64,000 nucleotides of DNA from IMGVR_UViG_3300025098_000012:124001-188000, one strand, 5' to 3'. Shown: positions 11,074 through 48,512, numbered from the stretch's first letter. A program made the numbers and translations. The notes: a model not told the origin generated them from the letters alone.

Positions 11074-11133
11074 ATTCTTTAGATACCTTTCGCTTATAGG
11101 GTGAGGAGAATATACCCTCAGAATGGAGTCCAC

Positions 11134-12423
11134 ATGACAAAGGCAGTTTTGTTAGATACGAGTGTTTTAATACACGACCCGACCTCGATGACCTCTTTTG
11201 GTGATGATACCCAAGTCCTCATTCCAATCTATGTTATCATGGAGCTTGATGTTCTCAAAGACACACCAAAGCGTGAGAAATCTCATGTTGCACATCTTGC
11301 TCGTCAAGCATCTAATCTTATCCTTGAGCTACAGCCACAAGGTAAGGTCAAAGTAGTCTCTCACGATGGGGAGATCAGCATCAGATCTTTAGATCGTGCT
11401 AATCAGATTAGGTATGTAGACCTACTCATCCTTCAAACTGCTATCCATCTTAAAGATGATTACGATTTGACTCTTGTATCAAGAGACATCAACCTGCGTA
11501 TCATCTGTGAGTCGGTTGGTGTTAAGTCAGATGACTATACATCAGACACAAGCACAGACACTCTTAGTGGCATCGGACTCAAAGAGTTCGTTCCCGATGT
11601 TGTCTTAATGAACCAACTCGTTAAATCATATTGGCAAGGAGCTGTTAGACTCCCACACGAGTTTGACACACCTTTCCATGAAAACCAATACGGATGGTTT
11701 ATAGCACCTGGTGAAAAGACACATCTATTCGTACACAGAGACAACTCACTTTTCCCTGTCGATAAGGTGCGTACCGAGAAAGCTAAACCTAGAAATCTTG
11801 AACAACGAGCCGCTTTGGATGCTCTTTTAGATCAAGACATTGAACTAGTGTGTCTCTTAGGTAAAGCAGGTACAGGTAAAACCTTCCTTGCATTGGCAGC
11901 CGCTCTTGAACAAGCCCATACATATCAGCGTATTTTGCTCTCGAAACCTGTCGTTGATGTAGGTAACGGAATTGGTTTCTTGCCTGGTTCGCTCTCCGAA
12001 AAACTAGAACCTTGGATGCAGAGCTTCTTTGATAACCTCGATCAGATCAATCCTCTTTGGGATGCTGGTCCTATGGGTGGGGAGATGGGTAGTAAAGAGG
12101 GATTCCTAGAGAAGAACCAAATCGAGATCCAACCTATCCACTCGATTAGAGGTAGATCACTTAAACAAGCCTTCATGATTATTGATGAGGCACAGAACCT
12201 CACCAAACATGAGATCAAGTCAATCATCACAAGAGCGGCAGAAGGTACGAAGGTTGTACTTTTGGGCGACCCTTATCAGATTGACCACCCTTACCTCACC
12301 AAGCAATCTAATGGTCTTGTGTATGTGATTGAGCGTATGCTCGGTCAGCCTTTATTTGCGTGTGTGAGTCTACATAAGTCAGAACGATCTACGCTCTCGG
12401 ACATAGCGGCAGATCTTTTATAG
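11134..12423 (+). CDS. phoH: PhoH2-like PIN domain + PhoH ATPase
   Basis: N-terminal PIN (LLDTSVLIHDP...LVSRDINLR); GKAGTGKT; RGRS; IIDEAQN; LGDPYQID. Start MTKAV follows a GGAG RBS. Confidence 0.9.
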   Translation: MTKAVLLDTSVLIHDPTSMTSFGDDTQVLIPIYVIMELDVLKDTPKREKSHVAHLARQASNLILELQPQGKVKVVSHDGEISIRSLDRANQIRYVDLLILQTAIHLKDDYDLTLVSRDINLRIICESVGVKSDDYTSDTSTDTLSGIGLKEFVPDVVLMNQLVKSYWQGAVRLPHEFDTPFHENQYGWFIAPGEKTHLFVHRDNSLFPVDKVRTEKAKPRNLEQRAALDALLDQDIELVCLLGKAGTGKTFLALAAALEQAHTYQRILLSKPVVDVGNGIGFLPGSLSEKLEPWMQSFFDNLDQINPLWDAGPMGGEMGSKEGFLEKNQIEIQPIHSIRGRSLKQAFMIIDEAQNLTKHEIKSIITRAAEGTKVVLLGDPYQIDHPYLTKQSNGLVYVIERMLGQPLFACVSLHKSERSTLSDIAADLL

Positions 12424-19997: not shown

Positions 19998-20584
19998 AAC
20001 TTAACTCCTATACAAACTGGTTCCCAAGATTTCTTAAGGGTAGTGCCATAGCCCATGTAAAGAGAAGCCTCTTTAGTCTGAGGTTCAAGATCAAAAGCTA
20101 CTCCGTCTATCTGATAGTCTTTAGGTCGGAGGCCATGCTCTAAAAATATTTTACTATATCCTACTTTCCCTCCCCTACGACTACCTTTAAGTTTTTTAAA
20201 TGTTTTTTTGTTAGAGTTTCCAAATAAGAGTGTTGCCTCTATGCCTTTTGCCATGTCGTAGTTCCCTGTCGGCATACCACTTGTGTAAACCCATGCCTCG
20301 ACTACGAGGTTTACGAACCCTACTTCAATCATAGCAGATGTTAAATGATGCAATGTTTTAGCACTTGAGAACGCTTTAAGGACACCATTAGATTTAAGGA
20401 CTCTATGAGCTTCGGTTAACCATCCACAATGCCATTCTCTTTGTTGCTTTCCCAACCCTAAATCATCCCAACCTTTTTCCAAATACCTTACACCATAAGG
20501 GGGATCACAGATAATAGCGTCTACGGAGTTATCCTCTAGGTCTTTAAGTCGTTGGGTGCAATCACCAATCTTTATTTCTATCAT
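19994..20584 (-). CDS. Split methyltransferase catalytic module N1
   Basis: First 31 aa identical to N2 including DPPYG; divergent middle; ends WEPVCIGVKL. Confidence 0.88.
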   Translation of the reverse strand: MIEIKIGDCTQRLKDLEDNSVDAIICDPPYGVRYLEKGWDDLGLGKQQREWHCGWLTEAHRVLKSNGVLKAFSSAKTLHHLTSAMIEVGFVNLVVEAWVYTSGMPTGNYDMAKGIEATLLFGNSNKKTFKKLKGSRRGGKVGYSKIFLEHGLRPKDYQIDGVAFDLEPQTKEASLYMGYGTTLKKSWEPVCIGVKL

Positions 20585-21960
20585 TTCTTACTCCTAACGA
20601 TATGACCCACAGAGCCTAAAGTCGTGGCTATTGATATGGATTTGTCTAATAACTCTATTAGTCTACCAACAGGGAAAGGTTCATAGAGTTCTTTTATATC
20701 CCATACGCTAGAGTCATTCTCAGCCTTACCTAAGTTATGACATACGACTTTAAAAGGTGCTTTCAATGCTCGATCAAGATATGGGTTTCCTGTGTCTATA
20801 TTATAAAGGGTAGGTATTGCACCTTTAACATAACCATTTGCCTTTGCGTCCATCATAGAAATCAAGGCTTTTTCGGCTAATCCCCTTCTCCATCTTGCTT
20901 CAGCTTCGGTTGTTCCGCCAACTCTTAATCGAACAAGAGTTCCATTTAAAGCGTTGGCTCTTTTTCTAAGTTGATCTTGTGTGTGTGGGAAAGGACTACT
21001 TTCCGCTTCCCTTAAAAGTTCGTCTACTCTATTTGCTGTTGTATCTACATGATCATCATAAGGATCAACAATCATTTCATTGTAGTTAAGGACTGTGTTA
21101 ATCGCAGACCCATAGAACTCTGGTGAAAACTTTTCGTACTTTTGATCTACAACGGTTGCCCCTGTAAACGAAGCAAAGTCATCTAGCCAACCCTTACCCC
21201 AAATCACTCTAGGTGCGTCACAAGCGTACACTTCAAGCGTTCCCTTATGATTGTTCATCTTGATTGCTTGAAGGGCTTTACCCCCAACCATAGGAGCGAT
21301 AATGACTAATGGTCTTCCTTCAAACGACCCCATATACTCCATAGCGTTGAGTACATGATCTATTTCAAATACGGGGCGACTGAATAGAGCAAACATCGGT
21401 CCTTTAAGATATGCTTCTTTGTCATGGTGTACTTTTAAAGAAGCGTGGAAAGACTCTGTTTCAACCACCTCGCACCCATTACCCTCCCATTTCTCAAGAG
21501 AGACATGAGAAGATAAAGACCCTGCGAGATAGATTGCTTCAGATATTTTATCTATGGACTCCTCATCAAGCTCACTTTGTAGACCTATTTCTTTTAGTAT
21601 CTCTTGGTTTGAGTCAAATCGAGGCACATCATCCACAGCTATATTGACTGCTCCTTTAACTCCGTCTGTAATCTTAGGGTGGACTTCACCATAATGACGA
21701 TGAAAAGACCTTAACAGAGAAATCGTGACAAACGCTCCGAGCTTGCACCCATCACCAGACCTACACAGTTCTAATAAGGAAGTCTGAATGATCCTAGCGT
21801 GGGGTTCGGGATGATAAGCGTTGATGATCGACTTAGCCGAGAGGTTATTCCAAACCTTGTTGTTACGAGAGAGCAGGACTGTCCCTCCATTACTCGCATG
21901 GCTCAAAACTAAAAGTGATGATAGTTCGTTTATCGTAGGTATAAATAGAGATAACGACAT
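20581..21960 (-). CDS. Divergent GroEL-like chaperonin
   Basis: GroEL-like segments (GGTVLL, SGDG, GRPLVIIA, VYACDAP, LRVGGTTEAE, KGAIPTL); GDGTTT replaced by GDGCKL. Confidence 0.75.
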   Translation of the reverse strand: MSLSLFIPTINELSSLLVLSHASNGGTVLLSRNNKVWNNLSAKSIINAYHPEPHARIIQTSLLELCRSGDGCKLGAFVTISLLRSFHRHYGEVHPKITDGVKGAVNIAVDDVPRFDSNQEILKEIGLQSELDEESIDKISEAIYLAGSLSSHVSLEKWEGNGCEVVETESFHASLKVHHDKEAYLKGPMFALFSRPVFEIDHVLNAMEYMGSFEGRPLVIIAPMVGGKALQAIKMNNHKGTLEVYACDAPRVIWGKGWLDDFASFTGATVVDQKYEKFSPEFYGSAINTVLNYNEMIVDPYDDHVDTTANRVDELLREAESSPFPHTQDQLRKRANALNGTLVRLRVGGTTEAEARWRRGLAEKALISMMDAKANGYVKGAIPTLYNIDTGNPYLDRALKAPFKVVCHNLGKAENDSSVWDIKELYEPFPVGRLIELLDKSISIATTLGSVGHIVRSKK

Positions 21961-27329: not shown

Positions 27330-27575
27330 ATGGGAATCGACCCTATCACGCAATGCAATCTTTCACCCACCTTCACCTTGCGACTTGAGCATAAGGACGG
27401 ACACTATAAGTTTTGGGAGGCTACAGGTCGCCCAAATGGAGATGTAATCATCCGTTATGGACGCATAGGGGATTGGGGTACAGCAATCACAAAAGATCGG
27501 GCTTACTTTGAGAAGAAAGCCCCCACAAAAATCGCCAAAGGCTACAAAGTAGAGAGGATGGAACTATCATGCTAA
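27330..27575 (+). CDS. Stand-alone WGR domain protein
   Basis: HYKFWE...VIIRYGRIG...KIAKGYK. Confidence 0.8.
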   Translation: MGIDPITQCNLSPTFTLRLEHKDGHYKFWEATGRPNGDVIIRYGRIGDWGTAITKDRAYFEKKAPTKIAKGYKVERMELSC

Positions 27576-28357
27576 ACTCAATCAAAACATCAGATAACAT
27601 CTTAATCGTAACGGGTGCAGGTATCAGTACCTCATCGGGCATCCAAGCATGGCGAACAGGTGATGACGCTGTGTGGGCAAATGATGTGCTTGAGAAAGGC
27701 ACACAACGCTACTTCAACCGTAATCCTGCAAAAGCGTGGGAGTGGTATCTCGACAAGTTTAAGGGTGTCTTTGCCCTTGAGCCTAATGACGCTCATAAAG
27801 CTCTCGTGGAGCTTGAAACATGGTGCGAGTCAGAGGGTAAGACCTTTGACATCATCACACAGAATGTGGATCACCTTCACAACAAGGCAGGCTCACAGAA
27901 TGTCATCGAAATACATGGTACAACCAACGCTGTGCGTTGCCCTAATCATGGGTGTGATCATGGAGAGCCGAGAGGTTCAATCCCGATGAGCGAGGTATGG
28001 GCTGACTATAAGAAGTTTGAACAGACCAAAAAACCGAAAGACTTACCTTGTTGCCCTAAATGCGAGATCCCTTTAAGGGCACACGCTCTATGGTTCGATG
28101 AGTTTTATGGAGGTCACGAGGACTATCGCTTAGATGACGCTATGGGAGCAATCGAAGAAGCAGATCTAGTGGTCTTTATCGGCACTAGCTTCTCTGTAGG
28201 GATCACGAACATGGTGGTTCAAGCTGGTAGACAGATGAGGAAACCGATGTATATCATCGACCCTAGTCCTACCCAAGAGTCCAAGAGCTTCAAATACATC
28301 ACTGAGAAGGCAGAGGACTACCTGCCAAACTTAGTGCAACAACTGACTAAGAGGTAA
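27569..28357 (+). CDS. Sirtuin (Sir2/CobB-like NAD-dependent deacylase)
   Basis: TGAGISTSSGI, ITQNVDHLH, EIHG, CPNHGC/CPKC Zn sites, IGTSFSV. Confidence 0.93.
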   Translation: MLNSIKTSDNILIVTGAGISTSSGIQAWRTGDDAVWANDVLEKGTQRYFNRNPAKAWEWYLDKFKGVFALEPNDAHKALVELETWCESEGKTFDIITQNVDHLHNKAGSQNVIEIHGTTNAVRCPNHGCDHGEPRGSIPMSEVWADYKKFEQTKKPKDLPCCPKCEIPLRAHALWFDEFYGGHEDYRLDDAMGAIEEADLVVFIGTSFSVGITNMVVQAGRQMRKPMYIIDPSPTQESKSFKYITEKAEDYLPNLVQQLTKR

Positions 28358-31093: not shown

Positions 31094-31357
31094 TTATGGG
31101 GTGAAAACACCAGAGGCGATCTCTCTAAAGCTAACGCAAGCATTGTCCATCATGTCGGGAACACGCATATCGAGATCTAAGAACCTTTTAGCGAGTGCTT
31201 GGTACATGATCATGATGTCCTCATCATCATACCCCTCATCTGATCTCTCTTCCTCGAAAGAGACAGAGCCGATGACTTTAGCGTGGCTAATCATCTCCAT
31301 CATAGGGATTTGATTGATGTAATCAATCCATTCTTCGATAGTAGCTAAATCTTCCAT
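31094..31357 (-). CDS. Small acidic hypothetical protein
   Basis: Start MEDL just after the helicase stop, AAGGA RBS. Confidence 0.6.
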   Translation of the reverse strand: MEDLATIEEWIDYINQIPMMEMISHAKVIGSVSFEEERSDEGYDDEDIMIMYQALAKRFLDLDMRVPDMMDNACVSFREIASGVFTP

Positions 31358-31358
31358 C

Positions 31359-34300
31359 TTATTTATCCTTTCTTGCTTTTTGAGCTTCAATGAGATCGGG
31401 ATCTTCTTCGCCTTCGATTAACTCGGCAACAATCTGACCTTGATAGTTTTCAAGTCTTAACTGCTCCCAAATCGCTTGTAAACAAGGATCTTGCGAGTCC
31501 TCCCAAAGTCTCATGTCAGAGGCATTAAACTCAGAGCCAAGTTTAACTCTCTGTTGCACATTCTCTACACTGTATTCTTTATTAGAACTTTGCTCTTGAC
31601 CAACAGCCCTACTCTGTAGAGATCTTCGACCTGGTGCAGGAGTTCTGTGGTTAGTTTGAGGGTCAATCAAGTCATACTTCTTCATATGTGCCTTGAAAAC
31701 CTTTTCAGAACCACAAAGTCTCTCAATCTTCTCACGAAGACCCTTATGTGCATACCATGCAGTACGATACGCTTCTGGATACTGACTGACGACCTCTGTC
31801 CACTTGAGATTTTGACCCTTGACAGAAATCTGATCTACTTCTTGTTCCCAACACCAAGGATCTTCTATATTAAGGAGATCCAACGGAGTATTAAGGAAAT
31901 CATTTACATCAAGGTTCGCTTCAAGAGCCTTTTTCTTGAGATATGCGTTAGCAATCTTCATCGAAGGTGTTCCATCTTCAAGGTATAGGGTCATACTACC
32001 CCCACCACCATACAAGCCCCATAGTTTCTCACCGACAGCGACACCGTAATCAGTTGACTTCTTCGCTTTGGGTTTTGGAGGTTTAGGGTTGTCAGTATCA
32101 TATTCAGATGATCTTAGATCCCAACCGTTCATCTCTTCAAGCAATGCTGTCGTATCTACAGCAGTACGAGGTGTGATAAGGCTGATGAAATCATTGCTAC
32201 CGCTGATTGTATGTGTAGTTCCATCATCAAGTCTAATACCAATGTTTCCATTGACATCAACTCTGTAAACTTCACCTTCCACACCAAACATTTGAGGAGC
32301 GATCCTCTGCAACCTCTCGCCATCAGCTTTGACTCGATCACCAACTTGCCATCTACCTTGTGGTGGGAGTACAGGTCGCTCACCAAGAGCATTCTTCTTA
32401 GCTTCTTCCCATGCTTGCATAGCATTTTTATAAGCATCAGCATCTGACTTTTTAACCTTCATGGTTACAATGTCAGCAGTGATTACCAAGAGCTTTAAGA
32501 GGTCAACACGACCAGGATCACCCATGATCTTTTTAACAGCTTGAACATAAACTTGATTAGGGCTGTTATTTGGAACACGACCCAAGAGGTTAGAGAGACC
32601 TATATTCATAGTAAAACCGAACTTAGGCCAAACTGCATAACCACTATATGTTCCGTCTCCTGGACTACCTGCGGCAAGACAGTCGATTTTCTTTATGCCC
32701 ATGCGTTTTGCTGTGACGATTTCTGCAAATAAGAACCTTGGAGAGAACCCTCTTGGAGCACATGGTTTAGCCTTAACATAGTCATTACTGATGCGATCTG
32801 ATTGTATTTTAACACGAGCACGCTCTATGTACCTATTTCCTTCGAGTCTGATAGCACCGCTAGAAATATCACCTCTTGTGTCACCCATAAAGAAGTTAGC
32901 AAGCTGAGGTCCACCCATAAGGTCAATGATCTGCTTTTGCTTCTTAGTGAGACTAGAGCCATCTCTATTGAACCTACCTGCCAACCATAGATCAGCATCA
33001 TCATAACGACCTGGATCGTAAGTGATGTGGCTTAGTGGGTTTGCATCGTACTCCTCAAGCTCTTTTTCAGCTCTAATGCAGTTCTCTTCTGTCGGATCAA
33101 GGACAGCCCTCATCATAGCAGGTGTTTTAATCGCAACACCTGTGTCAGAGACACGAGCATCAAGTCGCTTAGTAAGGTCAGACTTCAATCCATTAACGAT
33201 GATGTCTTGGAAGAAATCTTGATCTGCCTCATTAACCAAAGACTTGATTTGGTCAATTGAGAGCATATCAAAGTCATCTTTGACAGTCGCTCGCTCTTTG
33301 ATGTCCATGCCTTCTTCAAGAACGATCCTCTTAATAGGCTCTTCAGCACTTGGGAGGTCTACAGGAGTAACATAGCCCATAGTGTTAAAGATCTCGTTGA
33401 CTTTGGCTTCAACAACCTCAGAACCATCCCCTTCAAGAGTGAATGTGAAAGTGTCTGAAAGAACCCAATCATCTTCATCCCAAATGAATGTTTGGTAAGT
33501 CTTGCCCGACTGAAGCTCTCTTCTCTCAAGAGAACGAGCATTTTTAAGGTCAACTTTAAGACCACGAGCGTTATCGCTAACAGTACCCTCTGAATCAGAG
33601 TCTGGAGCAAAGGTAGCATCAATGTAGATTTCTTCTACCTGTTGAGCTTGACCACCACGATAAGCACGAGCGGTTCTCTGCTTCAAGAGTTCAGAGTCAA
33701 ACCCTTTACCACGATCAAGGTGGATGACTTTAGTGAAGGTTTGGAAGTTGAAACCACGAGCATAGTTATCCGAACAAACAGCAGTCGCTAAAGTGCTATT
33801 CTCTTTGACATACTTTTTCGAGATGTCCATAGCCCATGTGGACTCGGTTTCAGTATCTTCTTCTTCCTCTGAAGCCATCTTGGTGTAGATGCCTGTGTCG
33901 AGATACTTTTCATCGAAAGCATCAACGCTCATGTTGTCTTTCTCTTCGACCTTAGCGACAATCTCACCGTTCTGATAGAAGATGATTTCTTTAGCCCAAA
34001 GGACAGCGTGAACCTTGTCCTTACGGATCTTACTGTTCTTCTTGATTACAGACTCAGCAAGTTTAAGGTTCGAGCAGAAGTATAGGCACTTCTCGGTTCT
34101 ATTGTCCTTAAAGACCTTAGACCCGACATCAGCCTTAAACATACCCTCAGAAGAAATCCTAATGAGCTTGTTTAGAGCTGTTCTTACTTTAGAGGTAGCT
34201 TTAGTGAGGTCTTGATATGCCTTACTCTTTGTTCGATCAAAGAACTCTCCATCAGTGTCTTTCATAGTGTGTAGTTTATGTCGGAGATCACGATACTTAG

Positions 34301-37300
34301 CCACCATTGCTTTAAGCTCACCCGAAATAGCTTTAGCTTCGTCTTTGTACTTTCGCTGTATAGCACGAGGCATACGAGTAGTAAGAGTACGAGACTTGAG
34401 TTTCAAGAGCTTCGGCAAGTGGACATCTTCGTAAGCAACACCGAAATCTGGATCAACAGAGATGTCCATCTTGGGTGCAAAGTAAGCATTTTCTTTGACC
34501 CAATTGTGGAACTGTCCTTGTAGCTCCTTATTTGGCTTCAGTGCAACCATACGACCTGCGAGAACAACACCGTATTTGTTTGCAAAGGCTTTTTCACTCT
34601 TTGCAGTAGGAACTTCACCTTTAGCTAGTGTAGCGAGCCTATAAAGGTCAACAGGATCACGATCAAGAGCAGAAGCAGTCAAGAAAACTTTGCGAGGGTG
34701 TCCAAGAGATGACACAGCATAGTTTTTGTCCTTACCTGTATTGCCCTTCTCAAAGATCTCATTGATCTCATCAAAGAAACAGGCATAGTATCTGTCTTGG
34801 TACTTCTTATTCAAAGCAGGAGAGGACTTAGCCTTAGCTTGCTTCTTGAGTTTGTTGTACTGCCTACGAGACTTAGCAAGCTCCTTCTTCTTCGCATCCT
34901 TTTCAGAAGGTGAGAGAGCAGGATAAGAAACAAGTTCTTGGACGATTTTCGTTTCAGTTCTTCGAGAGGCTGTACGAACGATTGTAGGGTCAATCAAGTT
35001 GCCGATTTGGAAATCAACTTCTTTTCTCGAAACCTCACGACCGTTCTTATACTTAACCTCATAGGTAATGGTCGCTTCTTTGCCATGATGTTTGTTTTCA
35101 CGAGCTAGACGGTTTGTCTCAGCAACAACCTCTTTACCGTTATCCATGTCTAAGATGAGGTCGTCAATGCCTTCGGAACTCCTAAAGTCTGCAACAAAAT
35201 CCTCATAAGACATCTCGTCAATGCGATCAAGAACGATCTGTTGCCAGTTTGGAGTTGTCTCAACTTCACCGTCAGCTCGAACAAAATCATCCCCACCTGT
35301 AACCATAAAGTTAAGGACTTCTTTCTTCAAGTTTCCGACAAGGCTCTTAGGTGAAACATAGAGGAATCTACGATTTGCCCCTTCGCCACCTTCTTCCATA
35401 CCCTCATTGATTGCTTTTTTAATCGCAACGAGAGAGGTAAGAGTCTTACCAACACCTGTATCAAGAGCAATAACGCCCTGCATACCCGATGCTTCGAGCC
35501 AAGCAGCCGCTTCCTTTTGTTTGTTATTGAACTTGAGAGGCTTATTGTTTGGTAGCTTTTTAACAAAACCACCAAGAGTTTCGGGAGTGAAACGCTCTGT
35601 ATTCTCAACAGTAGTAGCGTTCTCTTTCGCTCTAAGTTTAGCGTAATACTCGTCCATAAACTTAGAGGCAGACTCACTTAAAGCTACCGAACCAAGAGAG
35701 TCACGAATAGTCTCAAAGTCTTCAGCAGAGAAAGTGAAGAAGGGGTTCTTATTCATGTGTCCAGTAGGGAGAGTTGGATCTTTCACAACATTAATTGAAG
35801 AAATCTTGCTCGCAAGATCCTTCATAATGTTTCGGTCAGCCTTACTAGCATTTTCACCAGGTACACCGAGTGTAAGAACACCTGTCTTTGGGTTGACCGT
35901 AATGTAAGGCTCAATAAGTCTTTGCTTATAAGTCCAAGAGTCTCCATCTTTGATCTTATCTACAGTACGAGCATTTCCCTTGTTATCAAAAGCGATGCGA
36001 TCTGTTTCAACCTTGACCGAGCGACCACCTTCTTTTTTAACATAGCCACCCTCAATAAAGCGACCTTCCATGTTTAAGATGGTGTCGAGTTCATATCCAG
36101 CGTATCGACCCTCAACAACGATCTCCCTGTCCTTACCCTCCGAGTCTTTCAGAGTAACAAGACGGAAAGTTTTGCTCAGACCTTCTGACCCCTTAATCTC
36201 TCTGAATGAAGGGGTTAAAACTTTGTCTTTAAGACTTGGGTCAAGGTCGGGGTTTCTTCCAAGATTGATACGGTTCAAGGCTTCTTGTAAAAGATCCTTG
36301 TAGTGTACAGGATTGTAGGTGCTTCCCGATGGGTACTTGAAGCAAGCAATCTTAACCTTACGGTCTTTGTAAACAACCTTATTACCATCCCAATCGGGGT
36401 AATTTTCGACTGTGATTGTTTCGGTTGTGATCTTCGGCTGTGTAAGCCTTTCTTTCTTTTTGTCTTTACGATTCTTAATAACCTTTTTAGCGAGTGCTTC
36501 CATGTTATTAAAGCGTTTATATGTGTTGCCTAGCTCATCAGTAAAGTCACTGCTATAAACACCTTTAACAAGAGGCTTCATAGCGAGTCGGTAGTTGAAA
36601 ACTTCCGTACTATGAGCGGCTTTATTCTCACAGATCGCTCTGAACTCTAAGAGCTTGTCGAACAACCTAACAGCTCGGTTGTAAAACTTGAGGCGAGACT
36701 TAGGCACTTTATATCTAAAGTTAGGCATACCTGCTTGGTTGTAGCCTGCTTCTGGCTCACCATTAGGAAGTTTTCCATATCCCTCTTTAAACTGAGGGAT
36801 AGAGAACGCTCTAGCGTTCACTTTAGCTAAAGAAATCCGACTAATGATGAGATCATTCTTCTCTTTTTCACCAGGCTCGTAGGAAAGGAAAGGTTTACCA
36901 CTCTCATCCTTTTGAACTGAACACTTGGGAGCAACGAAAAATTCTTTTGGATCAGTATTAGATCCGTAGACAGTATCTTCAGCCACTAAGCTCTCTAAAG
37001 CAAGAATGATCTCTTTATCCTTCTTAGAGAAAACAGGTGTTTTAGGCTTGCTTCGAGGCTTAGGGATCTTGGTTGCTTGTTGATCGTAAGCAACGGTGAG
37101 ATACGCTACACCTTTGTCTCTGCCCTCTGTGATATATACAGGCTGAGTTTCTACATGATAACCTTGCTCAAGTAGAGAAGATTTGAGCTTCGCATCTCGA
37201 AGTTTCTTCAGTCTTTCAGCTTTTTTGATCTCACCTGCGACCATCTCACTTGAGTTGGCGATCAGTTCACTGATTTCATCTCCTACAGAGAACTGCACAT

Positions 37301-37904
37301 ACCGAATGTTAAACTTAGGGTTACTTTTAACTTCGGTGAGGACATTGATGCCGAGCATATTGAAGCATTGTTTAATGAAATCTGCGTAGAAGCCGACTGT
37401 TCTCTTATAATCTGAACTTCCTGCGGCTCCCTTGAGCATACCTACGATCTGATTGATGTCAGTCCCTGTAAGGGCCCCTGCCAATCCCATGTTGATGTTC
37501 TTGTCAATGACTTTGAGTCGAGCTTCAATTTTGGTTGCAAGCTCTCTTGTGCCTTTTGGGGCTTTCATTGCATACTTTTGAAGCAAGTATCTCCAACTTT
37601 TTGCAAAGTCTTGTCTGAGTGTAGACATGGGAAAAGGAGGTCTACCTGCTTTAAGCCCACCTTCATAAAGCATCTTAAAGTATTCATCAATAAGACAAAT
37701 GTTGTAGTAGATCTCAAATGTGTCAGTTACTTCTTTGCGTCTGACTTTGACGATCTGACCTTCGATGGGATTACCATCTTCATCTGTCTGCTCAACCTGC
37801 TCCCCTTTTGCGTTTAGGACAGGAACATAAGCAAAGTTCTTGACCACCATATCATAGAGCTGACCTCTATATGGCTTGACTATGCGATTTCTTCTTACAG
37901 CCAT
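31359..37904 (-). CDS. 2,181-aa SNF2/SF2 helicase-like protein with C-terminal GNAT-like and SH3-like segments
   Basis: ALDTGVGKT (Walker A), FFDEIN (variant Walker B), LTAS, RGFNF, QRTARAYRGGQ; GYAVWPKFGF GNAT-like; class A motif upstream of MAVRR. Confidence 0.8.
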   Translation of the reverse strand: MAVRRNRIVKPYRGQLYDMVVKNFAYVPVLNAKGEQVEQTDEDGNPIEGQIVKVRRKEVTDTFEIYYNICLIDEYFKMLYEGGLKAGRPPFPMSTLRQDFAKSWRYLLQKYAMKAPKGTRELATKIEARLKVIDKNINMGLAGALTGTDINQIVGMLKGAAGSSDYKRTVGFYADFIKQCFNMLGINVLTEVKSNPKFNIRYVQFSVGDEISELIANSSEMVAGEIKKAERLKKLRDAKLKSSLLEQGYHVETQPVYITEGRDKGVAYLTVAYDQQATKIPKPRSKPKTPVFSKKDKEIILALESLVAEDTVYGSNTDPKEFFVAPKCSVQKDESGKPFLSYEPGEKEKNDLIISRISLAKVNARAFSIPQFKEGYGKLPNGEPEAGYNQAGMPNFRYKVPKSRLKFYNRAVRLFDKLLEFRAICENKAAHSTEVFNYRLAMKPLVKGVYSSDFTDELGNTYKRFNNMEALAKKVIKNRKDKKKERLTQPKITTETITVENYPDWDGNKVVYKDRKVKIACFKYPSGSTYNPVHYKDLLQEALNRINLGRNPDLDPSLKDKVLTPSFREIKGSEGLSKTFRLVTLKDSEGKDREIVVEGRYAGYELDTILNMEGRFIEGGYVKKEGGRSVKVETDRIAFDNKGNARTVDKIKDGDSWTYKQRLIEPYITVNPKTGVLTLGVPGENASKADRNIMKDLASKISSINVVKDPTLPTGHMNKNPFFTFSAEDFETIRDSLGSVALSESASKFMDEYYAKLRAKENATTVENTERFTPETLGGFVKKLPNNKPLKFNNKQKEAAAWLEASGMQGVIALDTGVGKTLTSLVAIKKAINEGMEEGGEGANRRFLYVSPKSLVGNLKKEVLNFMVTGGDDFVRADGEVETTPNWQQIVLDRIDEMSYEDFVADFRSSEGIDDLILDMDNGKEVVAETNRLARENKHHGKEATITYEVKYKNGREVSRKEVDFQIGNLIDPTIVRTASRRTETKIVQELVSYPALSPSEKDAKKKELAKSRRQYNKLKKQAKAKSSPALNKKYQDRYYACFFDEINEIFEKGNTGKDKNYAVSSLGHPRKVFLTASALDRDPVDLYRLATLAKGEVPTAKSEKAFANKYGVVLAGRMVALKPNKELQGQFHNWVKENAYFAPKMDISVDPDFGVAYEDVHLPKLLKLKSRTLTTRMPRAIQRKYKDEAKAISGELKAMVAKYRDLRHKLHTMKDTDGEFFDRTKSKAYQDLTKATSKVRTALNKLIRISSEGMFKADVGSKVFKDNRTEKCLYFCSNLKLAESVIKKNSKIRKDKVHAVLWAKEIIFYQNGEIVAKVEEKDNMSVDAFDEKYLDTGIYTKMASEEEEDTETESTWAMDISKKYVKENSTLATAVCSDNYARGFNFQTFTKVIHLDRGKGFDSELLKQRTARAYRGGQAQQVEEIYIDATFAPDSDSEGTVSDNARGLKVDLKNARSLERRELQSGKTYQTFIWDEDDWVLSDTFTFTLEGDGSEVVEAKVNEIFNTMGYVTPVDLPSAEEPIKRIVLEEGMDIKERATVKDDFDMLSIDQIKSLVNEADQDFFQDIIVNGLKSDLTKRLDARVSDTGVAIKTPAMMRAVLDPTEENCIRAEKELEEYDANPLSHITYDPGRYDDADLWLAGRFNRDGSSLTKKQKQIIDLMGGPQLANFFMGDTRGDISSGAIRLEGNRYIERARVKIQSDRISNDYVKAKPCAPRGFSPRFLFAEIVTAKRMGIKKIDCLAAGSPGDGTYSGYAVWPKFGFTMNIGLSNLLGRVPNNSPNQVYVQAVKKIMGDPGRVDLLKLLVITADIVTMKVKKSDADAYKNAMQAWEEAKKNALGERPVLPPQGRWQVGDRVKADGERLQRIAPQMFGVEGEVYRVDVNGNIGIRLDDGTTHTISGSNDFISLITPRTAVDTTALLEEMNGWDLRSSEYDTDNPKPPKPKAKKSTDYGVAVGEKLWGLYGGGGSMTLYLEDGTPSMKIANAYLKKKALEANLDVNDFLNTPLDLLNIEDPWCWEQEVDQISVKGQNLKWTEVVSQYPEAYRTAWYAHKGLREKIERLCGSEKVFKAHMKKYDLIDPQTNHRTPAPGRRSLQSRAVGQEQSSNKEYSVENVQQRVKLGSEFNASDMRLWEDSQDPCLQAIWEQLRLENYQGQIVAELIEGEEDPDLIEAQKARKDK

Positions 37905-37963
37905 TGTGTTCTCCTTTGGGTTTAAAATCCACACTGATAGAGGTTTGATAAAAGAACTACAAA

Positions 37964-38215
37964 TCAATCTTCTATGATGTAGCCTTGCTTCCTTAGCTTG
38001 ATAGTTAAGTGTGCGAGTTTGATAGGGTCGTTGGAACTGACCACAATTTTATGATCTTCAATGATGCTTACATCCCAATCTTCTTTTTGAAGGTTGCGTA
38101 TAAACTTTTCCCCGAAAGGATACTCTTGAGGGTGGATCGTAATGTCATATTTCTGAGTCATCACCTCAGCGACCCATCTCTTCACGATGTCTTTAGGTAA
38201 GATTTTATCCGTCAT
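37964..38215 (-). CDS. Small hypothetical protein
   Basis: 83 aa, ATGA-coupled to the upstream gene. Confidence 0.55.
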   Translation of the reverse strand: MTDKILPKDIVKRWVAEVMTQKYDITIHPQEYPFGEKFIRNLQKEDWDVSIIEDHKIVVSSNDPIKLAHLTIKLRKQGYIIED

Positions 38216-38778
38216 AAAATTACCTTTTTCCGATCCACCTCTTCTGGTAGAACTCTAAGGAGAGTGATGTTTTCACTTATAACTTTAAATGTATTGTACA
38301 CATCGCTTAATTTTGGAGATTGTTCCATAGCCTTTAAACACTTCAAGTATCTGTATCTGATCTTTCCTTGTGTATCACCTAAAAGACGAGCCACATAGCT
38401 TTGGCTAGAGTAGGTATATAAAAGAACTAATACTTCGATGTCTTTGCTGTCGATAAAAAAACTAGAAAGTAAATCTCTTAGTTCAGCCTCCTCATAAATT
38501 GTTATTTGTGCGTATATCTTCAACCTCTCTAATCCTCTATTAACCCTATAATGGACATTTGGTTGAGTATACCCAAAGATTTTTCCGAGATATGCTTGGC
38601 TGAGTCCATGCAATAGGTGTAGCTCAACCATATCAGCTTCAACAGGTGAAACTTTGCTCATGTGTTCTAGGATTGAATGTATCTTTTCAATCTGATCATC
38701 TGGAACATAATTTGGAGTTGGGCAAGTATGGAGTCCCTGCGAGTCCGAAAATATCTGTTCCATTAACTTCTGATCCAT
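38212..38778 (-). CDS. Sigma region-4-like double-HTH protein
   Basis: GLSQAYLGKIFGYTQPNVHYRVNRG and SQSYVARLLGDTQGKIRYRYLK. Confidence 0.65.
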   Translation of the reverse strand: MDQKLMEQIFSDSQGLHTCPTPNYVPDDQIEKIHSILEHMSKVSPVEADMVELHLLHGLSQAYLGKIFGYTQPNVHYRVNRGLERLKIYAQITIYEEAELRDLLSSFFIDSKDIEVLVLLYTYSSQSYVARLLGDTQGKIRYRYLKCLKAMEQSPKLSDVYNTFKVISENITLLRVLPEEVDRKKVIL

Positions 38779-38782
38779 TTTT

Positions 38783-39301
38783 TTAAGCCCCTTCTACGGA
38801 TAAACAATCTATAGTGTGTATGATTTCTACACTCCTAAAAGACAGGTGGATAGCGTACATTCGTACATCGCCATCTCTCCAAGTCATCACTACCTCTCCC
38901 TCAAAGCTCTTAAAAGGACCAGATTTTAATCGAACATAGTCTCCTTGTTTGAAAGAACCCCCTAGATTATCCACTTGCTTGACCATTCTCTTCAAATCAG
39001 AGTCGGGGATCACTCCCATACTCATAAGGCCAGTGCGAGAATCTAGTTGAGAGATGATGTCTCTTACTAACCCACATTGCTTTAAACTATAATACTCAAC
39101 AGCACCATACCCACTCTTGATGAAGATATACCCTTCCATTAACCAAATAGGTTCATGGTATCTCTGAACCATCAAAGGTATGTATACATCATCAACATTA
39201 AAAGCAGTGTTGGAAACAATTCTATCTTTGAGCGACCCTTTTAGGGCTTCTTCTTCGCCTTTAGTTGAAAGCTCAAGGACAACCCACGAAGTTTCTCTCA
39301 T
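38783..39301 (-). CDS. nusG: NusG-family transcription factor (NGN + KOW)
   Basis: WVVLEL...VYIP...EGYIFI; GDYVRLKSGPFKSFEGEV KOW motif. Confidence 0.85.
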   Translation of the reverse strand: MRETSWVVLELSTKGEEEALKGSLKDRIVSNTAFNVDDVYIPLMVQRYHEPIWLMEGYIFIKSGYGAVEYYSLKQCGLVRDIISQLDSRTGLMSMGVIPDSDLKRMVKQVDNLGGSFKQGDYVRLKSGPFKSFEGEVVMTWRDGDVRMYAIHLSFRSVEIIHTIDCLSVEGA

Positions 39302-43892: not shown

Positions 43893-44804
43893 TCACTCCA
43901 CACCAAACTTAACCATCCAACGACCAATCGTACTCGCACCCACATCAAGATACTTGGCAATCCTACGCTGACTCCAACCCTTACTCCTTAAGTCCTCTAA
44001 GATGCCTTTGTCCATCTTCTTCTTGATAGCATTGTTGCGACCTTGAAAACCAAAGTCCAACTTGTAAGACATACAATCGGGTACATGAGGCTTAATGATC
44101 TCAATGAAACGATCAGCGTTATCACCCTTAAAGTGAAACTCTCCTGCCTCCCCTTTTTTATGTGTCCAGTTAGGAGCTAAACCAAACTTCTCAAAGATTA
44201 AGTAAGCGTTAGCTCGACTCCCCTGTTTTGCTCCAAAACAAATCTGAGGCCAATGTCCTGCATTACCATCATCGAGATACCACATAGCCAAAGCTAACTC
44301 ATCTACTTGGTCTATAACATCAGACTTAACAACTTTCCAACCCTTATCCCTATCCTCATAGAACAAGTCTCGATACTCATTAAGCATTGGGTGAGCGTGG
44401 GTGCGAAAGATATATGAGGTAAAATCTCGGCTCTTCGCTGTGGTTAACTCACCACTTGACCATTTGCCCCACTTCTCTTGCTTCCACTCAAGATACTCTT
44501 TCTGATTCGGTGCGTGTCGTTCCTCATAGTGTGAAGCGTTCGTTCTAAAGGCAATACGACCGTCACCTAGCATAGAACCAATAAGGATTGATCTTAACTC
44601 CCCCTCAATCTTTGGTAGCTCAAGACGATCATATTTAGCCACTGTCTCAATCTCATAGCGTAGTCTCCAACTACGGACACGCTTTATGCTTGAGTCAACA
44701 CCCTCAGAAATCAACAAATCGTTAATCTGCTCCTGTGTTAAGTATTGCTTAGTATAGAGGTCTTCAAAACGCTCTTTAGATATAGGGCATGGTATCGCTC
44801 TCAT
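43893..44804 (-). mobile_element. Free-standing LAGLIDADG homing endonuclease with terminal HTH segments
   Basis: LIGSMLGDG and LAMWYLDDG motifs; C-terminal WSQRRIAKYLDVGASTI HTH. Confidence 0.88.
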
Positions 44805-45118
44805 AACCAACCACCCCCTAGATCCTCTTTTCCTGTCAGCAACCAATATACTGTCGCAATCATAAAAAGAGTCATACAGATAAGAAAGTACACAAATCCT
44901 ACGATAACAAGTACCCCAATAGAGTTCAAGTTGAGATCAGAAAAGACAAAACCCCAAAAACCTTCCCAACTGAAGTAGCCAAGTAGCCCCCCTATGACGA
45001 ATCCTGTTAAACAAGTCATAAAGACAGACAAGTACAGGCTACACAAAGTAAGGAGGAACTTCCCTACCTTATGTACTAGGAAGCATACCCTGTTGAAGAT
45101 GCGTTCAAAAGCGTTCAT
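44801..45118 (-). CDS. Membrane protein, ATGA-coupled to the endonuclease
   Basis: Two to three hydrophobic segments. Confidence 0.6.
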   Translation of the reverse strand: MNAFERIFNRVCFLVHKVGKFLLTLCSLYLSVFMTCLTGFVIGGLLGYFSWEGFWGFVFSDLNLNSIGVLVIVGFVYFLICMTLFMIATVYWLLTGKEDLGGGWL

Positions 45119-45120
45119 AA

Positions 45121-45187
45121 TGACCTCTTTAGGTTCTTGTGTGGTTGGTTGTGTTCCATTTGTACCACTATGAACCTAAAGAGGTCA
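45121..45187 (-). promoter_or_regulatory. 16-bp perfect inverted repeat sequestering the RBS of 44801-45118
   Basis: tgacctctttaggttc / gaacctaaagaggtca. Confidence 0.7.
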
Positions 45188-45208
45188 AGATTTATTTCCC
45201 CTAGATAC

Positions 45209-45243
45209 AAAAAAACCCCATCTCCCGAAGAAGATGAGGTTCT
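45209..45243 (-). terminator. Intrinsic terminator after the major capsid gene
   Basis: CCTCATCTTC-TTCG-GGAGATGGGG stem with cUUCGg loop and a T-tract. Confidence 0.85.
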
Positions 45244-45303
45244 TTCTAAGTACCTCTTACACCTACTAAGTAGGCGAATGTACAAGCATTGTTATCTTAA
45301 AGA

Positions 45304-46182
45304 TTAACGCTGTACAGTAAGACGAGCAAGACCACGAGGGTTGTAAGCTCCGATACCCAAGTTTTCAAAGACACTGAAGCCGATTGTACGAGCTTTAGGA
45401 TCGTCAGCAGAAAGGACGGTCAACTCGGTACGAACAGGGATACGACCAAACATCTCTGGCTCACAGCAGACATAAACAGTTCCAACAGGAACAAGTCGGC
45501 TAGTGATGATCTGAGCACCCCAAAGGGTAGCCTGTAGACCAGTCTTGAGAAGTGCCGCTTGGCTCTCGATGTCGAGAATGTCACGACCGAACTTACGGAT
45601 GTCAGCGTAATCACGAGCATTCATGAATACACGAGCAACACGAAGGTCATGACGCTCAATGAGGCTGTATGCGTCAGCAAGAACAGCACCATTAAGAGGA
45701 GCGATAACAGGAATGTCAGCGTTAGTCTGACCTGCAACGCTATCAAATCCGTTAGCCGCAACTGCATCAAGGATAGCGAATACACGCTCGTCCTCAGCCG
45801 CTTGGATTTGAGCACGAGCAAGATCCTGAGCACGCTCGATAAGGTCGAACCTACGCTCTTTGATCTGTGTGAGTGGGATCTCTGGGTTAGAAGCGATCTC
45901 AAACAATGGGAAGATAACCCTGCGTGGCTTGGTGATAGCAAGGATGTTCTCACCCTCTTCACCAACTACGAAAGCAGTCACATCGGGATCTTTGTCGTAG
46001 ATAGGTAAAGCACCATCTGGAAGTTGCTCGACTAAGAAAGTCTTACGACCAACAGAGGTGTAATCTCTACGAAGGCGAAGTGGTTGAGTCATTGAAGCGG
46101 CGAGCTTCGCACGACCCTGTGGAGTCTTAATGTAGTCAGAAATGATCTTCTGTTTTACGGCATTATCAACTGTATTACTCAT
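45304..46182 (-). CDS. Major capsid protein (HK97-like)
   Basis: 292 aa; ends the protease-scaffold-decoration run; LWGAQIITSRLVP P-domain-like motif; strong terminator. Confidence 0.85.
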   Translation of the reverse strand: MSNTVDNAVKQKIISDYIKTPQGRAKLAASMTQPLRLRRDYTSVGRKTFLVEQLPDGALPIYDKDPDVTAFVVGEEGENILAITKPRRVIFPLFEIASNPEIPLTQIKERRFDLIERAQDLARAQIQAAEDERVFAILDAVAANGFDSVAGQTNADIPVIAPLNGAVLADAYSLIERHDLRVARVFMNARDYADIRKFGRDILDIESQAALLKTGLQATLWGAQIITSRLVPVGTVYVCCEPEMFGRIPVRTELTVLSADDPKARTIGFSVFENLGIGAYNPRGLARLTVQR

Positions 46183-46943: not shown

Positions 46944-48512
46944 TTATCCGAAGAACTTGCTTACATCGGGAGCAGACTCCCAAAGTTTAGAAAGCTCATC
47001 AGAAGCACTTGAAGCCTCACGAGAGATGTTACCGAGAGTCTTAACAGCCGCTTTACGAGCAGAGGTGCGTGGGCGATAAGAAGCCTTCTTATCAGCCTTT
47101 TCCTCTTTAGCCTCTTCCTCAGTAGCTTCTTCTTCGGTAGCTTCTTCTTCGGTAGCTTCTTCCTCAGTAGCTTCTTCCTCAGTAGCTTCTTCGGTAGACT
47201 CTTCCTCAGCGTCTTCATCAGCCGCTGTGAAGATTGAAGCGAGGCGAGGGTCCATAGCCATTGCATCTTCTGCGTCCATGTCAAGACCCATGACATCTTC
47301 ACCCATGCTCATTGTAGTTTCGACTTCTTCAGCAGTATATCCATACTCTGGATCATTCTGCTCACGAGTGTCATCTGCTTCAAGCTCTGCAAGGAGAGTT
47401 GCCATCTCATTATCAGCAGTAGTGTCCATGTCAGACATATAAGTTGAAAGAGCTTCTGCAAGACGCTCAATCTTTGCTAAACGCTGAGTAGGCTGACCCT
47501 CTGAAGGCTCACTAGCAGGAGCAGTCTCAAGTGCTACAGTGTCGTTCTGACCTTGATAGCCTGTACCAACTTGTACTGCGTTATCAGCGAGTTTACGAAC
47601 CTTGCGAGCAAGACGAGCATTAGCGGCTTTAAGAGTAGCGATTTCTTCTGCGAGAGCTTCGGCTGATGAAGAGTGATCCTCAGCCATCATCATAGCCTCG
47701 TGATCTTCAGCCATCAACATTGCTTCGTGATCTTCAGCTTCAAGATCAGCCATGATTTGTGAAAGCTCATCTTCTGCTTCAAGTTCGTCTGCGAAAGACT
47801 CACCAAGACCAAGAGCGATTTCATCACGAGAAAGGAAGCCATCCTCATTCATATCAAGATCGTCAAAGATCTCGTCAGAGCCACCCCATTCGTCCATAGA
47901 AATCATGCCATCGCCATCGGTGTCATAAGCGTCAAACATAGAGTGACCCATGTGATCGTCAGCTTCTAGTTCATCACTTGCATTTCCTGGTCCTGTGAAT
48001 TCAAGACCTTCATCATACTCAGTTCCAACTTGTACAGCATTGTCAGCAAGACGAGCAACACGAGCATTAACAGTACGACTAGGAAGATCCATCATGCGAA
48101 GTGCAAGATCCTCGATCTCACGCTGTGAAGCAGTACGACCAAGACGACTTTCAGCGATGCGAATGCACTTAGCCGCTTTACGCTCCATAGCTTTTTTAAG
48201 GTTCTCTTGGCGAAGGTCATCAGTAAGAGCATAATCTTCAACAAGCTCATCGCTTACAGCAGGATGCTCTGGCTCCCAACCATAAGATGCAGGAGCAGGA
48301 CCAGAACGGTAAGGTCCTTTACGGACTCCTTCACCGAACTCTGAGTCGAAGCCATACTGATCTACAGAAGGCTGATCGGATGAAGCAGGGTGACCGAAGT
48401 GATCCCAACCAAGATTATCGTATCCTGGGAGGCCAGAGTTTGCTCTGCGATTTCTTCTACGAGCAAGCTCTGCCCTGCGAGACATATTCTTAGAACGAGA
48501 ATACCTAGACAT
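46944..48512 (-). CDS. Scaffold-like acidic protein with an EF-hand pair
   Basis: Between protease and capsid genes; highly acidic; coiled coils; DTDGDGMISMDE and DMNEDGFLSRDE loops. Confidence 0.7.
   Translation of the reverse strand: MSRYSRSKNMSRRAELARRRNRRANSGLPGYDNLGWDHFGHPASSDQPSVDQYGFDSEFGEGVRKGPYRSGPAPASYGWEPEHPAVSDELVEDYALTDDLRQENLKKAMERKAAKCIRIAESRLGRTASQREIEDLALRMMDLPSRTVNARVARLADNAVQVGTEYDEGLEFTGPGNASDELEADDHMGHSMFDAYDTDGDGMISMDEWGGSDEIFDDLDMNEDGFLSRDEIALGLGESFADELEAEDELSQIMADLEAEDHEAMLMAEDHEAMMMAEDHSSSAEALAEEIATLKAANARLARKVRKLADNAVQVGTGYQGQNDTVALETAPASEPSEGQPTQRLAKIERLAEALSTYMSDMDTTADNEMATLLAELEADDTREQNDPEYGYTAEEVETTMSMGEDVMGLDMDAEDAMAMDPRLASIFTAADEDAEEESTEEATEEEATEEEATEEEATEEEATEEEAKEEKADKKASYRPRTSARKAAVKTLGNISREASSASDELSKLWESAPDVSKFFG
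47110..47205. repeat. 15-bp tandem repeats encoding (EEEAT)n
   Basis: gtagcttcttcttcg / gtagcttcttcctca units. Confidence 0.9.

Follow-up and report, generated by a model that had tools for sequence, protein, structure and literature searches.

The DNA considered here is IMGVR_UViG_3300025098_000012:124001-188000, a stretch of 64,000 nucleotides (the window, in what follows) that spans positions 124001-188000 of an IMG/VR virus record; the record has 226,698 bases and an estimated completeness of 73%. Its minus strand carries a giant gene whose product, a protein of 2,181 residues, unites an SNF2-type ATPase core with a domain of the GNAT superfamily. The parts of the protein follow one another as an N-terminal region of 780 residues, the SNF2-type core, a conserved linker, the GNAT-superfamily domain with a barrel inserted into it, and a helical tail. 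On balance, we favour the view that this gene encodes a multi-enzyme effector of the polyvalent type, belonging to a marine huge phage related to phage G, and that its motor would carry GNAT domain and barrel alike, early in infection, to a host target that is bound to DNA. Judging from its sequence, the protein is probably a tool of host takeover or of anti-defence. The polyvalent theme, and SNF2 and GNAT domains as its parts, are known already; what is new is the SNF2-GNAT architecture, the N-terminal region, the split GNAT domain with its barrel, a constant partner open reading frame (ORF), and the size and tandem habit of an uncatalogued GNAT family. The gene and its parts are the following:

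31359..37904, minus strand: the giant gene, a complete coding sequence of 2,181 codons plus a TAA stop (ORF list, translation, AAGGAG site, full-length orthologs)
35565..37904, minus strand: N-terminal region, residues 1-780, conserved in the lineage, with no Pfam, PHROGs or PDB profile match
33585..35564, minus strand: SNF2-type core of superfamily 2 (SF2), residues 781-1440 (Pfam, ZorD profile match, invariant motifs)
35442..35456, minus strand: motif I/Walker A, GVGKT, residues 817-821, invariant in 16 orthologs
34761..34772, minus strand: motif II/Walker B variant, DEIN, residues 1045-1048, with D1045, E1046 and N1048 invariant
33648..33680, minus strand: motif VI, QRTARAYRGGQ, residues 1409-1419, invariant and aligned to motif VI of ZorD
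33093..33584, minus strand: linker, residues 1441-1604, with the highly conserved helix SIDQIKSLVNEADQDFFQDII (conservation profile; common to the divergent ortholog P0023)
32415..33092, minus strand: GNAT-superfamily domain, N-terminal part, residues 1605-1830
32172..32357, minus strand: five-stranded KOW/Tudor/SH3-like barrel, residues 1850-1911, inside the GNAT domain
31905..32057, minus strand: GNAT-superfamily domain, C-terminal part, residues 1950-2000 (VGEKLWGLYG...MTLYLEDGT.SM..ANAYL), aligning with the ends of stand-alone homologs
31362..31904, minus strand: C-terminal tail, residues 2001-2181, conserved and helical with an acidic end, without a family match

A single frame stays open from 31359 to 37967 on the minus strand and closes with the TAA at 31359-31361; the preferred start is the ATG at 37904, 7 bases past an AAGGAG. 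We infer that a frame of such length, at 42% G+C, did not arise by chance. The G+C content of the gene is that of the flanking DNA, and a scan for promoters and terminators counted fewer sites than shuffled sequence gave. Genes on the record include those for a major head protein, a maturation protease, an intein-bearing large terminase, a clamp loader and a sigma region-4 protein, as well as PhoH, Sir2 and a GroEL-like protein. Because the head protein is related to those of Tunturiibacter phage Tunturi_5 (309 kb, 46% identity) and Bacillus phage G (498 kb, 38%), and because the gene sequence occurs in marine and seawater metagenome runs, the source is taken to be a huge marine phage akin to phage G.

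The window protein (P0002; its relatives are numbered P0003 and so on) has 22 metagenomic relatives in total, comprising 20 full-length orthologs, one shorter ortholog and one fragment. The full-length orthologs are 2,026 to 2,192 residues long, share 37 to 90% identity and all come from metagenomes, on contigs of up to 376 kb (whole-length word search, 21 proteins). The shorter one, P0023, is a divergent protein of 1,618 residues that lacks residues ~274-590 and an insert of the core at ~910-1035. The fragment, P0190 (856 residues), was found in a word search with the N-terminal profile and is 73% identical to the N-terminal region; it carries a precomputed PF01970 match that is at odds with everything else observed, and is probably a truncated or chimeric gene call. 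The protein is conserved over its whole length save for a single variable stretch (~1831-1949). The whole protein matched nothing in PHROGs, nor anything by tblastn in 50,697 phage records at E<=1e-5; megablast against INPHARED phages was equally empty, as were PDB profile searches with the whole, C-terminal and N-terminal alignments. No relative of the protein or of its ATPase core was found in phage G, Tunturi_5 or the 485-kb uncultured phage LR745208.1, the phage's own record serving as positive control.

The ATPase core displays motifs I, Ia (SPKSLVGNL), II, III (TAS, residues 1076-1078), V and VI in order, with ARGFNFQ at 1382-1388. Throughout the 16 orthologs compared, GVGKT, SPKSLVGNL, DEIN, TAS, ARGFNFQ and QRTARAYRGGQ are invariant, apart from variation at the third position of motif II, which is DE-x-N and not DE-x-H across the family and reads DEVN in P0023. 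Motif VI has the SNF2 form Q..R..R.GQ, and the Walker A, DE-x-N and arginine-finger motifs are all intact. In the window protein, the Pfam families DEAD, SNF2-rel_dom, ResIII and Helicase_C all remain below threshold; against a cut-off of 24.9 bits, SNF2-rel_dom (PF00176) gives 18.1 bits for P0002, and passes in two orthologs, with 28.2 for P0023 and 25.6 for P0021. The best solved match to the core profile is ZorD (8qy7), at an E-value that improved from 0.031 to 0.0017 once P0023 was added, followed by the Rad54-like 1z3i at 0.47. The structure 8QY7 is that of ZorD from the Zorya defence system of E. coli, a protein with a Snf2-related domain (PMC11946911). The alignment with these two nearest solved Snf2 ATPases brings together motifs I/Ia and V/VI. 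The E-values are only 0.0017 and 0.47, and the window's core differs by its DE-x-N motif and by an extra insert of ~170 residues before motif II. The core inserts lie at about 870-1040 and about 1085-1270, and spacings of about 1085-1270 and about 1300-1375 are compatible, as sequence spacing, with the helical inserts of SNF2 proteins. From its sequence, the core is taken to be an active SNF2-type ATPase. An earlier note on this DNA had called, from the sequence alone, a reading frame of 2,181 residues at these positions with SF2 motifs, a variant DEIN and long inserts, and all of this is confirmed: the frame is open, has its AAGGAG start and 20 full-length orthologs, the motifs are ordered and invariant, PF00176 passes in two relatives, and one of the inserts (about 910-1035) is the one missing from P0023. 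The RTAS, KMAS and class A motifs listed in the same note did not hold up. RTAS (977) and KMAS (1342) are each present a single time, the family consensus does not keep KMAS, and S-x-x-K turns up 12 times; all these short strings, the class A motif included, are treated as chance strings without support.

An AlphaFold2 model of the N-terminal region has a predicted local distance difference test (pLDDT) score of 77. It shows several alpha/beta modules besides a four-helix bundle at ~55-187. Structure searches with this model, BFVD included, returned generic helical-bundle matches only, and Foldseek against pdb returned none at E<=1e-3. The best BFVD row (E 6e-3, probability 0.11), a crAss-like protein labelled 'ART-PolyVal-like', is not counted as evidence. 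Beyond the family, the word search with the N-terminal profile found no relatives, its sole addition being the 856-residue fragment of the same family. The linker has low pLDDT in the model, and the tail (2001-2181) matched no known family.

Several lines of evidence place the second domain in the GNAT superfamily. In an AlphaFold2 model of residues 1530-2181 (mean pLDDT 74), the order of elements fits the beta2-3-4/alpha3/beta5/alpha4/beta6 arrangement of GNAT proteins, CAPRGF (1715-1720) standing at the beta4-alpha3 junction and GYAVWPKFGF (1755-1764) after beta5. A Foldseek-independent search of 48,161 chains matched model residues ~126-476 to the GNAT structures 1yre (Z 6.7 over 128 aligned residues), 3tcv (6.6 over 142), 2z0z (6.4 over 132) and 5kta (6.0 over 121), which make up all but one of the five rows in the top 50 that are not barrels. 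Taken alone, these middling scores for the fold are moderate evidence. Foldseek against pdb gave weak rows for the C-terminal model, none at E<=1e-3, and in a further PDB structure search barrel matches filled the list and added nothing on GNAT. Because the models cover multidomain pieces, fold scores understate or blur single domains. A scan of the phage's own record with PF00583 gave no match, while control genomes matched.

Homology carries the assignment further. A profile of residues 1640-1830 retrieves stand-alone proteins of ~255 residues, and hhalign of the domain against these solo proteins gives a probability of 99.2 and an E-value of 2e-19. In an alignment that includes the orthologs without a barrel, the homology resumes past the variable stretch, where WW..HG...M.FDL...S.SW..L..YL of the solo proteins corresponds to LWGLYG...MTLYL..GT.SM..ANAYL of the phage protein. 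The domain is therefore made of residues ~1605-1830 and ~1950-2000, with the barrel inserted between them. Searches of the ESM Atlas by language-model features and by shape both reach clusters of solo proteins, of 218 and 263 residues, with template modelling (TM) scores of 0.70 and 0.61. Related copies of the domain score as Acetyltransf_1 at overlapping coordinates (48.0 bits for P0047, 52.6 for P0075, 21.3 and 21.2 for others, for a cut-off of 20.7), and Acetyltransf_7/10 also match family copies; by this transitive homology to Acetyltransf_1, membership of the GNAT superfamily is settled. Among 226 copies, the family signature reads AP-x-G-[LI]-G-[TAS], A..K.G[FV]..I...AAG, G-Y-x-x-W-P-[RK]-x-G-[FY]-D, W-W-x-x-[NH]-G and F-D-L-x-x-G-S-x-S...L..Y, and of the 21 positions that at least 70% of the copies conserve, the phage protein keeps 16. 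The SH3-like stretch begins at WQVGDRVKA (1852) and folds in the model into the five strands of a KOW/Tudor/SH3-like barrel (residues 1850-1911). It is a variable insertion (residues ~1831-1949), missing in the four most distant full-length orthologs and partial in two others. The GNAT-like GYAVWPKFGF segment and the SH3-like segment that had first drawn attention to this part of the protein thus prove to be what they resembled, the former by structure matches, model topology and transitive homology, the latter by its fold.

The domain belongs to a large family. Its profile, run against 1.84 billion representatives, detects 2,978 proteins at E<=1e-3 and 1,850 at E<=1e-10. Among the best 147 of the 2,978, 53 are of solo size, 82 exceed 800 residues and 92 hold two to four copies. 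Domains residing with it in the giants include ART-PolyVal, ADPrib_exo_Tox, InPase, NUDIX, SocA_Panacea, Phage_Mu_F (in two proteins), Portal_Mu, Phage_portal_3, ATLF, Zeta_toxin and 2'-5' RNA ligase. Six giants of 1,000 to 3,900 residues (P0045, P0047, P0051, P0056, P0058 and P0140) have two to four tandem copies of the GNAT-like domain intermixed with ART-PolyVal, ADP-ribosyl exotoxin, InPase, MuF and portal domains, and the three copies of P0045 score nearly equally. Pfam finds no domain in 18 solo homologs, and NCBIfam has no match to the GNAT domain or to the solo proteins; the family is catalogued in neither library.

Solo homologs were located on 15 betaproteobacterial plasmids in PLSDB (from Burkholderia, Cupriavidus, Variovorax, Ralstonia and Janthinobacterium), 8 of which are typed as conjugative. 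In two metagenome contigs (L008 and L010), the solo gene lies near an Antirestrict (PF03230) gene and a gene for a protein of ~660 residues, which in L010 gives a weak ParB_N match; L010 also has SSB and KfrA, and L008 a Phd antitoxin. A small ORF of 78 to 84 residues (MTA..K...Y.IA...RAK...FGESRI.IPEF) lies 3' of the solo gene in four of five contexts. It overlaps the solo gene in three contigs and follows it after a gap of 3 nucleotides, as an 81-residue ORF, on a Janthinobacterium plasmid; no small ORF was called downstream of a truncated solo gene (L014). This arrangement suggests that the solo gene and its small ORF could form an unrecognised two-gene module, for establishment or for toxin and immunity. 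The stretches in which these solo GNAT-like genes, of ~255 codons, lie are the following:

L008, 6001-7064
L010, 6001-7001
L013, 2192-3210
L015, 9001-10020

The company kept by this GNAT family is that of the polyvalent proteins. As described in the sections of PMC5512222 (Iyer et al. 2017) that deal with them, these include SNF2 domains and GNATs, the latter beside ART domains, and an InPase fused to NUDIX and GNAT; the same sections present DarB, which is borne in the capsid and protects incoming DNA, as the archetype of the SNF2-bearing members. The window protein resembles this class in being one very large phage polypeptide with a SWI2/SNF2 ATPase and a protein-modifying domain, and in having a GNAT family that accompanies ART-PolyVal, InPase, NUDIX, MuF and portal domains and occurs as solo proteins on plasmids. 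At least two effector or enzymatic domains stand in one phage polypeptide, and one of them is common to other polyvalent proteins. It departs from the class in that its SNF2 domain has no adenine methylase partner, that it lacks MuF, portal and LPD domains, and that it has an N-terminal region of 780 residues without relatives, a barrel inside the GNAT domain, and a place in a marine huge phage genome. The combination of SNF2 and GNAT is not described in the keyword-matched passages of PMC5512222.

Other comparisons delimit the protein further. The solo plasmid proteins are homologous over the whole domain and, like the giant gene, are tightly coupled to a small downstream ORF, but they stand alone, have no barrel, keep two conserved aspartates that the window protein has lost, and have a small ORF unrelated to that of the phage. 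MuF-type polymorphic toxins of phages are said to be large proteins that end in a C-terminal effector and are often followed by a small protective gene; two proteins of the same GNAT family carry Phage_Mu_F, but the window protein, unlike these toxins, has no MuF domain. Finally, host RNA polymerase is acetylated by certain phage GNATs, phiKMV Rac among them (as cited in PMC7824862). The GNAT domain of the window protein could likewise modify a host protein during takeover, but it belongs to another GNAT family, and the window protein has no PF00583 match.

The proposed mode of action assembles these elements. The SNF2 motor would bind double-stranded DNA and track along it, or strip proteins off it. 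GNAT domain and barrel would thereby reach a host target that sits on DNA, for example a protein of the nucleoid, of defence or of transcription. Early in infection, the GNAT domain could then acylate or bind this target, which would help the phage DNA to become established. The protein would either travel in the capsid or be made straight after entry. Delivery in the capsid is suggested by analogy, from the fusions of the same GNAT family to MuF, portal and ART-PolyVal domains and from the DarB paradigm.

Several observations weigh against this reading. No RNA run is found among the sequencing runs that hold the gene sequence, and neither Pfam nor NCBIfam calls a GNAT in the window protein itself. 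The glycine-rich loop for coenzyme A (CoA) is degenerate, reading AP-R-G-F-S-P as against AP-x-G-[LI]-G-[TAS] in the family, and two aspartate positions (family columns 186 and 231) that are 83-84% conserved in the family are occupied by T and Y. With this loop and both replacements, the catalytic activity of the window's copy is uncertain, and the GNAT domain may bind rather than catalyse. Both aspartates are also lost in the close relatives P0003, P0005, P0006 and P0014 (T at one position; Y, H or N at the other) and are kept in nine other orthologs, P0009 and P0013 among those that keep them; the replacement may be a recent change or a loss of activity within the lineage. Acetylation of host proteins, as proposed in the earlier note, is plausible but weakened by the loss of the two acidic positions. 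As to delivery, no packaging or delivery domain (MuF, portal, LPD) was detected in the giant protein, and in close relatives the gene sits in a clamp-loader/sigma-like/NusG-like block, away from the classic genes for injected proteins.

This neighbourhood deserves a description of its own. The giant gene is part of a long leftward block. The major head gene, which has the same orientation, lies about 7.4 kb upstream of it, and genes for replication and transcription stand between the two. From the sigma-like gene to the partner ORF, the genes are tightly packed, with 4-nucleotide overlaps upstream of the giant gene and a 1-nucleotide gap downstream of it. The adjoining features are:

37964..39301, minus strand: upstream co-oriented overlapping genes for an 83-residue protein, a sigma-70 region-4 protein and a KOW-containing NusG-like protein
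31094..31357, minus strand: partner ORF of 87 codons, its ATG 1 nucleotide past the giant-gene stop (TAAGATG), kept in relatives

The sigma-70 region-4-only protein (188 residues) and the KOW-containing NusG-like protein (172 residues) are encoded at 38212-39301 on the minus strand. The order clamp loader, ORF at the NusG position, sigma region-4, ~83-residue ORF, giant gene and ~87-residue ORF is maintained at 37-50% identity, the KOW match at the NusG-like position being seen in the window's copy only. At the P0023 locus (L016), the linkage to sigma and NusG is lost; tail-fibre-like genes (Mtd_N, Laminin_G_3, PA14) lie upstream and replicative genes downstream, and DNA polymerase III delta, ribonucleotide reductase and a RecD-like helicase are among the neighbours.

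The partner is the sole constant companion of the giant gene. An ORF of ~87 residues, 29-57% identical, lies directly downstream, at 1 nucleotide, in all four relatives examined, and in the window the partner is translationally coupled to the giant gene. Searches against known families gave no match for it, and a kinship with the 78-84-residue plasmid ORF was dropped at an hhalign probability of 0.3. Complex prediction with the C-terminal 652 residues returned a score of 0.00, which counts neither for nor against binding. A fuller but unlikely version of our reading gives this partner a task. The protein would be a motor-coupled acyltransferase delivered with the DNA or right after it; the SNF2 motor would run along the entering genome while the GNAT/Tudor part acylated or sequestered DNA-bound defence or nucleoid proteins in cis, and the 87-residue partner would keep the protein inactive in the producer cell. 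Were this true, it would amount to a kind of anti-defence that no phage has yet been shown to use, and it would provide the first function for a GNAT family of ~3,000 clusters outside Pfam.

The main rival to a polyvalent effector sees in the giant protein an SNF2 motor of the RapA/Mfd type that docks on host RNA polymerase via its barrel and works with the sigma-like and NusG-like proteins, its GNAT domain modifying the polymerase as phiKMV Rac does, with no injection involved. We consider it somewhat unlikely. The gene order from the clamp loader through the KOW protein, sigma region-4 protein and 83-residue ORF to the giant gene, kept at 37-50% identity, speaks for it, and both RapA-like SNF2 proteins and Rac-like GNATs have been proposed for jumbo phages (PMC7824862). 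It is weakened because the barrel, on which the docking would depend, is variable and absent from the more distant orthologs, and because synteny is lost at greater distance, as beside P0023, where the sigma/NusG linkage is gone and tail-fibre-like genes precede the gene. Moreover, small barrels are a very common fold, and past the SF2 motifs there is no sequence similarity to RapA or Mfd.

The clamp loader next door, and the copy at L016 near DNA polymerase III delta, ribonucleotide reductase and a RecD-like helicase, would also suit a replication or recombination helicase that replaces enzymes of the UvsW type, the GNAT-like, barrel and N-terminal parts being structural or DNA-binding only. 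Group-specific Snf2 helicases have been proposed in the recombination of jumbo phages (PMC7824862), and the loss of the conserved GNAT aspartates fits a non-catalytic role. Such a helicase is nevertheless quite improbable here. Related huge phages (phage G, Tunturi_5, LR745208.1) are devoid of the gene, which is thus not a core replication gene of the clade, and the strict conservation of G-Y-x-x-W-P-K-x-G-F and the polyvalent company of the domain are hard to square with a scaffold alone. A true homolog of P1 DarB, acting in antirestriction by modifying the incoming DNA in cis, was another candidate, the earlier note having called the protein DarB-like in size. What survives of that comparison is size and logic: both proteins have about 2,200 residues, an SF2/SNF2-like motor and a second enzyme domain, and DarB is the archetype of SNF2-bearing polyvalent proteins in the sections of PMC5512222 cited above. 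Homology, on the other hand, is largely refuted and very improbable, since the window protein has no detectable similarity to DarB (tblastn at E<=1e-5 is without a match in the 50,697 phage records, among which we take phage P1 to be included) and no methyltransferase (Pfam found no methylase family at E<=1), and since the order of parts differs, with the accessory enzyme C-terminal and an N-terminal region that matches no family.

Elsewhere in the window, and on related contigs, several observations are worth recording beside the auxiliary genes, which are:

27569-28357, plus strand: Sir2-like NAD-dependent deacetylase
11101-12423, plus strand: PhoH
20581-21960, minus strand: GroEL-like chaperonin

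Genes of these three kinds are typical for large phages. A Sir2-family gene (PF02146) also lies ~7.6 kb 3' of the giant gene in a relative (L006). The large terminase (1,040 residues; 1207-4329, minus strand) contains an intein with Intein_splicing and LAGLIDADG_3 matches, flanked left and right by terminase PHROGs. A free-standing LAGLIDADG endonuclease gene stands just 3' of the major head gene (43893-46182, minus strand). The 485-kb LR745208.1 (L002, 15001-17885) has a head protein 89% identical to that of the window, and within 15 kb on each side the only other common content is LAGLIDADG-like ORFs beside the head gene; such a pattern may reflect capsid-gene exchange linked to a homing endonuclease. 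LR745208.1 had been considered as a close relative missing the giant gene and was dropped as such; because the head gene and LAGLIDADG-like ORFs are all that it has in common with the window, the absence of the gene there is weakly informative. Between the head protease and the major head protein lies a gene for an EF-hand calcium-binding protein of 522 residues (46944-48512, minus strand), kept in L007 (1-706), which is unusual in a head module.

Polyvalent proteins are regarded as the earliest weapons that phages and plasmids bring into a cell, and few have been studied beyond DarB. The locus offers a compact and conserved pairing of a DNA motor with a protein-modifying module. It also exposes a widespread GNAT family missed by domain libraries, together with 780 conserved residues that match no recognised fold. 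The protein therefore provides testable entry points into host takeover by huge marine phages that are as yet unculturable.

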